Shown here one piece after another: positions 24,172 to 28,115 of a DNA stretch of 64,000 nt. Source of the stretch: Piromyces finnis finn. Its lineage: Eukaryota > Fungi > Neocallimastigomycota. The notes under the pieces were generated by a model. It was not told the DNA's origin and did no database searches. It saw nothing but the letters and a program-made list of their open reading frames with translations. The position numbers were made by a program, and so were the translations under genes. The DNA lies in NCBI GenBank assembly GCA_002104945.1, contig MCFH01000049.1, positions 1 to 64,000 of the forward strand, read 5' to 3'. How positions within the stretch are numbered: position 1 is the first letter of the stretch; every line of letters begins with the position of its first letter.

Positions 24172-24999
24172 CTATACTTTACTTTTACTATTTTTTTTAG
24201 CATTTTCATATATATTATCCCATTCCTTATTTAATTTTTCATTATATTTTTTATAAATACGAAAAGAAAGAGATACTTTACAATAAAACTTTAAACATTC
24301 ATAGTCCATAGTAGAATCTAATATATTAACAATAAAAACGTTTTCATTACTTGGAGGATTAACAACGAAAACCTCTCGTAATTTACGATAAATGCGAACA
24401 ACATGCAATTTAAAATAACAAAATTTTACATATTTAAAAAGATGTTCGGACGAAAAAACGGTTTGCGTAATGAGGACTAAAAATTCAAGATTTTTAACTT
24501 CAACCAATAAGAAAACAAATAAAACAATAATAACAAATGCTTTAAGACTTTCAAAAATAGTCATTTTTTTTACTATAAATTTCGTGAAAAATACATTTTC
24601 AAAAGTATTAAGACCCATTTTTTTTATTGATTCTTTTTCTTCATTATTATAATAGTCTCTGGAAGTTGTTTTATCAGTAATTGCTACATTAAAGGAATCC
24701 TTGATAAATACCTTTCTTCGTTCGTTTTCAGCCACATTTTTATAGTAAATATCGTTAAAATTAGTCAAGAGGATGTAGGTCAAACTAGTTAAAATATTTA
24801 TTATAAAGAATAAATCTTGATATTCAAATTCAATAATTGTAATACCGGATACCACCAAATTAATGTAAAATAAAAAATCTGTAATATTTTCTAAAGTATC
24901 AACTCTTTTAAATAGTTTACCAACATCATCTTTTTCTTTTTGACCTTTTTCAATTTTTTCCTTTGTTATATTATTATTTTCATTATAAAGGTTAATTTG
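24172..24999 (-). CDS. Intronless four-TM protein, downstream copy; no in-frame ATG at its N-terminus
   Basis: Frame open from 24999 to the stop at 24172. Homology to 24992-25816 starts at DDVGKLFKRV, upstream of the TTG start used by the ORF track. Shared motifs ERRKxFxKxSFNV, YYNNxEKESIKKMG, YECLK, KEWD. Confidence 0.7.
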   Translation of the reverse strand, partial: QINLYNENNNITKEKIEKGQKEKDDVGKLFKRVDTLENITDFLFYINLVVSGITIIEFEYQDLFFIINILTSLTYILLTNFNDIYYKNVAENERRKVFIKDSFNVAITDKTTSRDYYNNEEKESIKKMGLNTFENVFFTKFIVKKMTIFESLKAFVIIVLFVFLLVEVKNLEFLVLITQTVFSSEHLFKYVKFCYFKLHVVRIYRKLREVFVVNPPSNENVFIVNILDSTMDYECLKFYCKVSLSFRIYKKYNEKLNKEWDNIYENAKKNSKSKV

Positions 25000-25816
25000 T
25001 TAAAGTTTCTATTTTTTTATGATAAATAATGTCCCATTCTTTTGACAGAGTAGGATTGTACTTTTCAAAAATACGTGAAGAAAGAGATATTTTACAAAAA
25101 TATTTCAAGCATTCATAATTCATTGTACAATCAAGAATACGAGCTATGAAAATATTTTCTTCTTTAGGTGGAGAAAGGATAAAAATATTGTAGATCTCGT
25201 CATAAATAAGTTCCACTTGAGTTTTGAAATGACGAAATTTAAGAAATTTAAATATAAATTCAAATAAAAATAAAGTTTGACTAAAAATTAATTCAAATCC
25301 TTTTAAATCTTTTACTTGGACAAGTAAAATGAGGAAAATAATAGAAATTGTTGTTATTTTTATTGTTTCACCTCGAGCCATTTTATTTGAAATAAAACGA
25401 GTAAAAAATAAATTTTCAAAACAATTTACACCCATTTTTTTAATGGATTCTTTTTCCAAATTATTATAATAATTTTTTGTTTCATTTTCTGTAATATTGA
25501 CATTAAATGAATTTTTGAGGAATCCTTTACGACGTTCAATTTCTACTGAATTTTTTAAATAAATATTAATGAGATTTGTCATAATAACATAACTTGTACT
25601 CAAAAAAATTGTTGTGAAAATGAAATAATTTTGAAATGGTGATGTAATTAATGATGGTACTAATATACCAAAATTGATATATACTAATGTATTGGCTATG
25701 GTTTCATAAAAATTAATTTTATCATAAAGTTTACCAATATCATCTATGACTACAATTTCTTTTTCTTTTTTTTTTTTTGTTTCGTTTCTTAAAGCATCCT
25801 TTTTATTATCCGCCAT
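24992..25816 (-). CDS. Intronless four-TM protein, 274 aa (2TM-soluble-2TM-soluble), bacterial-like
   Basis: ATG-initiated 274-aa ORF with four hydrophobic segments; aligns over its full length with 24172-24999. Confidence 0.85.
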   Translation of the reverse strand: MADNKKDALRNETKKKKEKEIVVIDDIGKLYDKINFYETIANTLVYINFGILVPSLITSPFQNYFIFTTIFLSTSYVIMTNLINIYLKNSVEIERRKGFLKNSFNVNITENETKNYYNNLEKESIKKMGVNCFENLFFTRFISNKMARGETIKITTISIIFLILLVQVKDLKGFELIFSQTLFLFEFIFKFLKFRHFKTQVELIYDEIYNIFILSPPKEENIFIARILDCTMNYECLKYFCKISLSSRIFEKYNPTLSKEWDIIYHKKIETLTN

Positions 25817-27479: not shown

Positions 27480-28115
27480 AATTATTATATAATAGAGGAT
27501 ATGTACCACAGGTAAAACGATAGATAATTTTTTTTAATACTTTTAGGATTAGAATACCTAATTATAAAGTTAAATCACAACTTTTAAATAATTATTCCGC
27601 ATGGATTAAAGAAAATTCCAATTTAGATTTATACAATGATTTTGTTAAAGCAGTGTTACAAGAAAATGTAAATGAAGCGCATAAAAAAATTACTAAAGTT
27701 TATGAAAACTCAATAAATTATTATGATCTTCAAAATAAAAAAAGAGGTTACGAACACTGAAAATGAAGATAGATTAAATGAATCAAATTTTCACAAGTTA
27801 GTAATGGGATTATTCCTTTTATTAGGAGAAGATTATAAAGTCAAGACGAATAGAGAAAGTGAAACAGGAAGATATGATATTTGTATCATTCCAAGAAGAA
27901 ATCGAAACGTCATACCACTAGGAATAATTATTGAAATGAAGGTATGTAAAAAAAATTCAACTAAATATTTGACAAAGGTAGCAAAGGAAGCACTTCAACA
28001 AATATTAATGTAAAGAATATACAATAGAATTAGAAGATGATAAAATTCAAAAAACAATACTATATAGGGTATATTTCAAAGGATAGGAATGTGCTATTCA
28101 AATAGAATATAAAAA
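27480..28115 (+). pseudogene. C-terminal fragment of an AAA-ATPase-like + PD-(D/E)XK nuclease gene (PF09820/PF08011-type)
   Basis: Motifs LLYNRGY, RIPNYKV, FHKLVMGLF, KTNRESETGRYDICI, IIIEMKV, AKEALQQIxxKEY fit this bacterial family. Frameshifts at ~27735 (A7 run) and ~28005, in-frame stops, N-terminal ATPase missing. Confidence 0.8.

Follow-up and report, generated by a model that had tools for sequence, protein, structure and literature searches.

A Tandem Pair of CBASS-Type Four-Transmembrane Effector Genes, Apparently Orphaned From Their Cyclase, in the Gut Fungus Piromyces finnis

The genome assembly of the gut fungus Piromyces finnis (Neocallimastigomycota; NCBI GenBank GCA_002104945.1, 56.46 Mb in 232 contigs) contains, at positions 24,172 to 25,816 of contig MCFH01000049.1 (C177), two adjacent genes, here called copy A and copy B, whose products resemble the four-transmembrane (4TM) effectors of the bacterial system of cyclic-oligonucleotide-based antiphage signaling (CBASS). 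The stretch analyzed, referred to below as the window, comprises the first 64 kb (64,000 nucleotides) of this contig. The best overall explanation, to which we assign a probability of about 0.75, is that the pair represents an orphan CBASS 4TM effector family that was captured once, duplicated and retained, and that would respond to a new trigger in the fungus. Taken jointly, the identity of the family, its bacterial origin and its orphan status are held with high confidence, while the statements made below on function are considerably more tentative.

Assignment to the CBASS 4TM Effectors

The original prediction, made from the letters of the sequence, had described the pair as bacterial-like 4TM proteins that resemble effectors of nucleotide-signaling defence. 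Profile searches agree with this class. The PADLOC model for the CBASS "Effector 4TM", PDLC00719, matches copy A with an E-value of 2.5e-51 and copy B with 7.4e-48, near end to end (in copy A residues 25-265 against profile positions 5-251 of 256), and a six-frame search of the genome with the same model returns matches of 1.8e-50 and 2.6e-49. A second 4TM model, PDLC00726, matches copy A with 1e-28 and copy B with 1e-22. The bacterial relatives described in the next section match the same PADLOC 4TM models, and 12 columns are invariant across an alignment of 39 fungal and bacterial sequences.

Both genes lie on the minus strand as intronless open reading frames (ORFs; Table 1), as had been predicted, and align with each other at 51% identity over 213 residues (E 5e-68); that they are intronless follows from the colinearity of each copy with single bacterial ORFs. 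Open frames of 274 to 275 codons would arise by chance at this composition with a probability of about 1e-12, the median stop-to-stop frame of the window being 6 codons. The start codon of copy A stands in a good context, with A at -3 and G at +4. The frame initially listed for copy B, 24858..24172 from a TTG, does exist, but the homologous open frame extends further, to 24999. All five motifs that had been quoted as conserved, namely ERRKxF, YYNN, FENxFFT, YECLK and KEWD, are found in both copies.

The proposed topology of two transmembrane (TM) helices, a soluble part, two further TM helices and a second soluble part is supported by hydropathy and by structure prediction. Hydropathy places two hydrophobic hairpins in both copies, at the same positions as in the bacterial relatives, and the K/R-rich N-terminal, middle and C-terminal segments together with short uncharged loops are consistent with a cytosolic soluble domain. 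An AlphaFold model of copy A built on the 39-sequence alignment is confident (mean predicted local distance difference test score 87, predicted template-modeling score 0.80) and predicts helices at residues 26-56, 62-104, 125-167, 171-214, 220-241 and 247-273, which would form four long helices, with membrane parts that extend into a helical bundle in the cytosol, and a helical hairpin at the C terminus.

Table 1. Features of the gene pair, with coordinates in the window.
Feature	Position	Strand	Description
Copy A	24992..25816	-	Intact intronless gene of the A lineage; 274 aa plus stop, ATG start
Copy B	24172..24999	-	275-codon open frame plus stop, B lineage, 5'-truncated
A/B junction	24982..25011	-	Read from the sequence and compared with B-lineage N-termini

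Bacterial Operons and the Missing Cyclase

Bacterial relatives were found by scanning prokaryotic genomes and metagenomes with back-translated patterns. The closest non-fungal relatives, at 31-44% identity, are encoded in gut and rumen Bacillota bins with genomes of 1.2-1.7 Mb (uncultured Bacilli, Erysipelotrichaceae RUG bins, Clostridium sp. CAG:609 and human-gut contigs), which is in keeping with the gut-bacterial donor that had been suggested and with the tree described below. More distant relatives, at 26-33% identity, are found on plasmids of Bacillus, Priestia, Staphylococcus, Lactococcus and Rhizobium. In all 19 bacterial loci examined, including that of the conjugative Lactococcus plasmid pMRC01, a SMODS cGAS/DncV-like nucleotidyltransferase (CD-NTase) is encoded on the same strand a few bases upstream of the 4TM gene. 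These partner cyclases match PF18144 with E-values of 1e-31 to 1e-44 and the PADLOC model PDLC00769 with E-values down to 2.5e-94, and by gene content and order the loci have the minimal two-gene layout of type I CBASS. The defence-gene context of the bacterial homologs, which was named at the outset as a check on the effector assignment, thus speaks for it.

The fungal pair has no such detectable partner in the P. finnis genome. Neither the window nor the whole 56.46-Mb genome yields a PF18144 (SMODS) match in six-frame hidden Markov model (HMM) searches, a bacterial partner cyclase protein used as query has no match in the genome, and the window holds neither a cyclase remnant beside the pair nor any other nucleotidyltransferase. 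The remark in the original prediction that no nucleotidyltransferase was seen in the window is accordingly correct, and for CD-NTase cyclases the negative extends to the genome as far as these searches detect them. The single weak PDLC00769 match in the genome, on contig C79 (E 0.005), was rejected as spurious, being a RasGEF-domain exon. Genome searches for Mab-21 and SAVED gave no match, but their controls were silent as well and the result carries little weight. The pairing with a CD-NTase, adjacent to the effector or in the same genome, that would make up a complete CBASS is found at each of the 19 bacterial loci and was not detected in the fungus, and the fungal effector is orphaned from its cyclase in this genome.

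Three observations concern individual bacterial loci. On the Bacilli metagenome-assembled chromosome CP091726.1 (L012:7196-8738) the operon is decayed, with eight stops in the 4TM match and a cyclase match cut to about 110 codons. At another locus (L007:8752-10202) the cyclase-4TM pair is followed by genes for an HD-domain protein (PF13023, 1e-26) and a protein of the metallo-beta-lactamase fold. The second of these matches the family of the anti-Pycsar nuclease Apyc1 below threshold, with 24.9 bits (E 1.6e-5) where the cut-off is 50. The genes downstream of the pair are different in the other bacterial loci.

Entry Into the Fungal Lineage and Duplication

A profile search identified 13 full-length sequences from gut fungi or gut fungus-like sources and three partial gene models, the homologs coming from Piromyces sp. 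E2, Anaeromyces robustus, Neocallimastix lanati and N. 'constans'; named orthologs are present in four other, independently assembled gut fungus assemblies. A maximum-likelihood tree was calculated from the 13 fungal sequences, with 32 bacterial sequences as further ingroup and seven distant bacterial or plasmid sequences as outgroups; support is given as ultrafast bootstrap/SH-aLRT. All 13 fungal sequences group in a single clade (100/99) that lies among bacterial sequences. Within it the A lineage (100/100) separates from the B lineage (98/89), and both lineages contain Piromyces and Neocallimastix. A- and B-type proteins are encoded on a shared contig in A. robustus, Piromyces sp. E2 and Neocallimastix. 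Loci of the family in these fungi include BCR32DRAFT_271639 and BCR32DRAFT_249217 (A. robustus), PIROE2DRAFT_62488 and PIROE2DRAFT_12533 (Piromyces sp. E2), and H8356DRAFT_989649, H8356DRAFT_1730208 and H8356DRAFT_1667118 (N. lanati). All 13 fungal sequences furthermore share the substitutions W257L, Y197F, L201V and Y133F, at positions that are conserved in bacteria.

The simplest history suggested by this phylogeny is a single entry into the fungal lineage, from a CBASS operon of gut Bacillota, before Piromyces, Anaeromyces and Neocallimastix diverged. The tree likewise indicates that the tandem duplication into the A and B lineages predates these genera, and the sequence of transfer followed by duplication that had been proposed for the pair is upheld by it.

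As a separate observation, position 257 (numbering of copy A; about 25048..25046 in the window), at which at least 90% of the bacterial sequences have Trp and 13 of 13 fungal sequences Leu, may mark a change in how the ligand is handled once the cyclase had been lost.

The Reading Frame of Copy B

The copies differ in the state of their 5' ends. The frame of copy B has no in-frame ATG before TM1, the first one being located in the KKMGLN motif after TM2. Copy A terminates at 24994..24992, and the copy B frame is closed upstream by stops at 25011..25009 and 25002..25000, in a stretch that aligns with the N-terminal extension of the orthologs and in which this extension would run into the 3' end of copy A. 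The sole ATG of the junction (24984..24982) is in another frame and is followed by a stop after five codons. Orthologs of the B lineage carry an N-terminal extension of 25-45 residues in which the motif K-H-x-LSCPELTV is conserved in Piromyces E2, Neocallimastix and Anaeromyces; this motif is not encoded near copy B. A fusion of A and B or an upstream exon for copy B was considered and discarded, no plausible donor/acceptor pair being found on reading the junction. Copy B was analyzed as its open frame, without repair or read-through; the match to it in the six-frame HMM search spans 24205-24936, within an open frame of 275 aa.

It is a serious possibility, though one put at somewhat less than even odds, that copy B alone is a recently disabled pseudogene, in which a deletion would have taken the upstream region, the start codon and the N-terminal motif and left B abutting A. 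Besides the missing in-frame ATG before TM1, the stops within the stretch homologous to the ortholog extension and the lack of that extension nearby, the long terminal branch of copy B in the tree (0.47, against 0.06 for Piromyces E2) and an identity to its orthologs below theirs to each other fit such a loss. Against it stands the 275-codon frame itself, which is intact and keeps as many conserved positions as copy A does (39 of 55). Roughly simulated neutral drift at this composition left the frame open with a probability of 0.11 at 20 replacements and of 0.004 at 45. Since neutral drift would soon close the frame, most of the divergence of copy B accrued under selection, and since long survival of the frame under drift is improbable, any inactivation must be recent. 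The missing start could instead reflect unconventional initiation or a mistake in assembling the A-rich junction. The 5' damage of copy B is hence either recent, or an artefact of assembly at the A-rich junction, or without disabling effect.

Two further observations touch on the N-termini. The extension of the B lineage, seen in the orthologs P0127, P0128, P0130 and P0134 and absent from bacteria, could be a eukaryote-specific regulatory handle, while the A-lineage extensions are of low complexity and unconserved. A 1-kb metagenome contig (L018:53-110) contains a Neocallimastix-type A-lineage gene whose frame, compared with the deposited P0004, breaks after six codons in an A-run; this contig ends in a run of A and shows the fragility of start regions in A-rich sequence.

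Selection, Retention and Possible Function

Comparison of copy A with copy B gives pN 0.31, pS 0.66 and a dN/dS of about 0.26, which is to be taken as a rough guide with dS, at about 1.6, near saturation. These values indicate that the A and B lineages have been under purifying selection since the duplication. Among 55 positions conserved in at least 90% of the bacterial ingroup, copy A and copy B keep 39 each, the same number as the cyclase-linked member of pMRC01. The residues retained in both lineages include the cytosolic polar and aromatic motifs E92/E94/R96/K97, Y116-Y117-N118-N119, Y234-E-C-L-K238 and W261.

In bacteria, by general knowledge of CBASS, the upstream CD-NTase would produce a nucleotide second messenger upon phage infection, the messenger would bind the cytosolic helical domain of the effector, and the effector would then permeabilize the membrane and infection would be aborted. 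A type I cyclase-4TM operon of E. coli provides broad phage restriction, and its toxicity requires an active CD-NTase (bioRxiv 10.1101/2023.05.21.541620). The type I 4TM class of CBASS effectors (PDLC00719, PDLC00726), the class encoded by operons such as EcCdnD12-4TM from that study, is the closest known counterpart of the fungal pair: the full-length HMM match is at E ~1e-50, the length, the 2+2 TM hairpins, the helical cytosolic layout and the conserved motifs are the same, and the nearest relatives are partners of SMODS cyclases. The fungal pair differs in its eukaryotic host, the lack of a detectable cyclase, its tandem duplication, the lineage-specific N-terminal extensions (in B with K-H-x-LSCPELTV) and lineage-wide substitutions such as W257L.

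Because the 2+2 TM hairpins and almost all conserved cytosolic polar residues have been kept, the fungal proteins may still be regulated membrane-permeabilizing or channel proteins that have come under a new trigger. This mode of action is the best supported of those considered but is put forward tentatively, as one possibility that falls well short of an expectation; candidate triggers would be the product of a fungal synthase, nucleotides supplied by microbes or viruses, or a protein input acting through the fungus-specific N-terminal extensions. A more specific version, which we regard as unlikely, is that the pair constitutes a cyclase-less offshoot of CBASS in which A and B would serve as ligand-gated death or ion-flux effectors, that is, as a cell-autonomous immune or death switch derived from bacterial neighbours, and that this switch would respond to cyclic (oligo)nucleotides, made by an unrecognized fungal synthase or by invading bacteria or viruses, or to a protein input through the N-terminal motif.

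The main rival to an effector under a new trigger is a housekeeping role, in which the proteins would be constitutive or otherwise-gated channels or structural membrane proteins, for instance of the plasma membrane or the hydrogenosome, that have lost nucleotide sensing and play no part in conflict or cell death. A non-lethal everyday function easily explains retention and duplication across genera, and both the absence of a detectable cyclase from the genome and the presence of W257L and other lineage-wide changes in 13 of 13 fungal sequences fit with it. However, both lineages keep the cytosolic polar and aromatic motifs of cyclase-linked members, which would be unexpected if ligand gating had been dropped, and a housekeeping role is on balance somewhat unlikely.

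Several points weigh against the reading of the pair as captured CBASS effectors with a new trigger. To our knowledge, the 4TM effector class is without a solved structure, a defined ligand or a defined mechanism of activation, also in bacteria. No solved structure resembles the AlphaFold model: the best Foldseek match in the PDB has an E-value of 0.7, a wide VIA-align comparison returns generic helical hairpins at Z-scores of at most 9.4 over residues 22-106, below its stated noise level for helical proteins, and a PDB sequence search with the family profile yields noise. EcCdnD12-4TM is likened to the fungal proteins by effector class and need not belong to their sequence family. The tree points to no particular bacterial sister group of the fungal clade, the ingroup starting in a polytomy with support of 94/57. 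Six-frame HMM searches may miss a divergent or intron-split cyclase, and the cyclase search covered the P. finnis genome, so that a linked cyclase may exist elsewhere in the phylum. Finally, copy B has no start codon and evolves more rapidly than its orthologs do, with 61.5% identity to the Piromyces E2 protein compared to 76.1% between the E2 and Neocallimastix proteins.

Among the structural comparisons, a likeness to ClyA-type pore toxins (XaxA, SmhB, AhlC) was considered and set aside, since the weak structural rows on which it was based are not evidence.

Relation to S_4TM, SLATT and Other Eukaryotic Acquisitions

The assignment to the Pfam family S_4TM (PF18159), which had been proposed from the motif layout, or to the SLATT families is not supported. 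Membership in these families would account for the four TM helices, for the SMODS association of the bacterial relatives and for the predicted membrane-disrupting role, and in a protein-language-model search the S_4TM cluster is third among, and closest of, the named look-alikes (score 0.89, 191 shared features), a result to be treated as a lead. Scans of both copies against Pfam and NCBIfam returned nothing useful, with no Pfam match, PF18159 and SLATT included, at E<=10 in the fungal copies, and none at E<=0.01 in four bacterial members. Alignment of the 39-sequence family profile with hhalign to a profile of five genuine S_4TM members from Bacillota genomes gives a probability of 1.3%, over 68 TM columns; that comparison profile is small and may miss very remote homology. 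Membership is on these grounds very improbable, and the resemblance to S_4TM is, by the tests run, one of layout and operon association between separate sequence families.

Studies of how eukaryotic immunity arose from bacterial systems have centered on cGAS-like synthases, STING, TIR, viperin and gasdermin. Hundreds of bacterial acquisitions are known in gut fungi, and a fungal version of SLATT exists in Pfam (SLATT_fungal), so that the phenomenon as such has precedents; SLATT is also among the eukaryotic acquisitions of this kind. A literature search returned no paper that combines Neocallimastigomycota with CBASS, and two surveys of transfers into gut or early-diverging fungi do not mention the 4TM effector family. 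The principal survey of CBASS-related acquisitions by eukaryotes is confined to CD-NTases (eSMODS and cGLR), bacteria-like STINGs without CD-NTases, and viperin (Culbertson and Levin, 2023, PMC10732462). These acquisitions are comparable to the fungal pair in that parts of bacterial cyclic-nucleotide defence were transferred horizontally and were sometimes orphaned from their partner, and they differ in concerning synthases or STING, a fungal 4TM effector not being mentioned there. Gut fungi are also reported to have acquired a bacterial toxin-immunity gene (bioRxiv 10.1101/2020.10.15.341461). As described there, it is likewise a case in which Neocallimastigomycota have kept a gene of bacterial conflict and not of metabolism, but it belongs to another protein family and would confer immunity to a bacterial toxin, in contrast to a self-acting membrane effector. 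For fungi, this 4TM effector family, parted from its cyclase, seems not to have been described before.

In the present case a eukaryote has captured a membrane effector of cyclic-nucleotide defence, duplicated it and retained it across genera under selection, apparently without its controlling enzyme. This raises the question of how a self-killing effector stays safe and useful once it is parted from its trigger, and it adds a conflict-system gene to the mostly metabolic catalog of transfers into gut fungi. The proteins of the pair are small, intronless and expressible, and clear operon partners in bacteria can serve for comparison.

Genomic Setting

The large ORFs around the 4TM pair are leucine-rich repeat (LRR) and chitin-binding genes, and proximity is the sole link found between the LRR cluster and the pair, which had been proposed as a candidate for a repurposed cell-death or defence module. 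The GC content is 16.6% on average in the window, 22.5% in the two genes, 13-14% in the fungal flanks and 21-23% in the bacterial homologs. Composition was rejected as a signal of transfer; as genes on the donor side equal the fungal ones in AT-richness, it cannot separate donor from host. A protein from the window is recorded on a 421,779-bp contig, its named closest relatives being from Anaeromyces, Neocallimastix and Piromyces.

That the pair represents bacterial contamination or a chimeric assembly, or a vertically inherited eukaryotic family passed from fungi to bacteria, can hardly be entertained: the GC content which the genes share with their bacterial homologs would suit contamination, but the pair lies within the 64-kb window of a 421.8-kb contig between 13-14% GC flanks and intron-rich LRR genes, has orthologs in four other independently assembled gut fungus genomes and never exceeds about 44% identity to bacterial proteins, and vertical inheritance is at odds with a fungal clade that branches inside a broad radiation of bacterial and plasmid members, in which the cyclase is always present.

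Separate from the 4TM pair, a fragment of a PD-(D/E)XK nuclease (PF08011 PDDEXK_9, E 5e-10) was observed on the plus strand at positions 27524-28010 of the window, about 1.9 kb upstream of copy A and on the opposite strand to it. The match runs across two adjacent frames in the GC-richest kilobase of the window (24%) and looks like a degraded gene.

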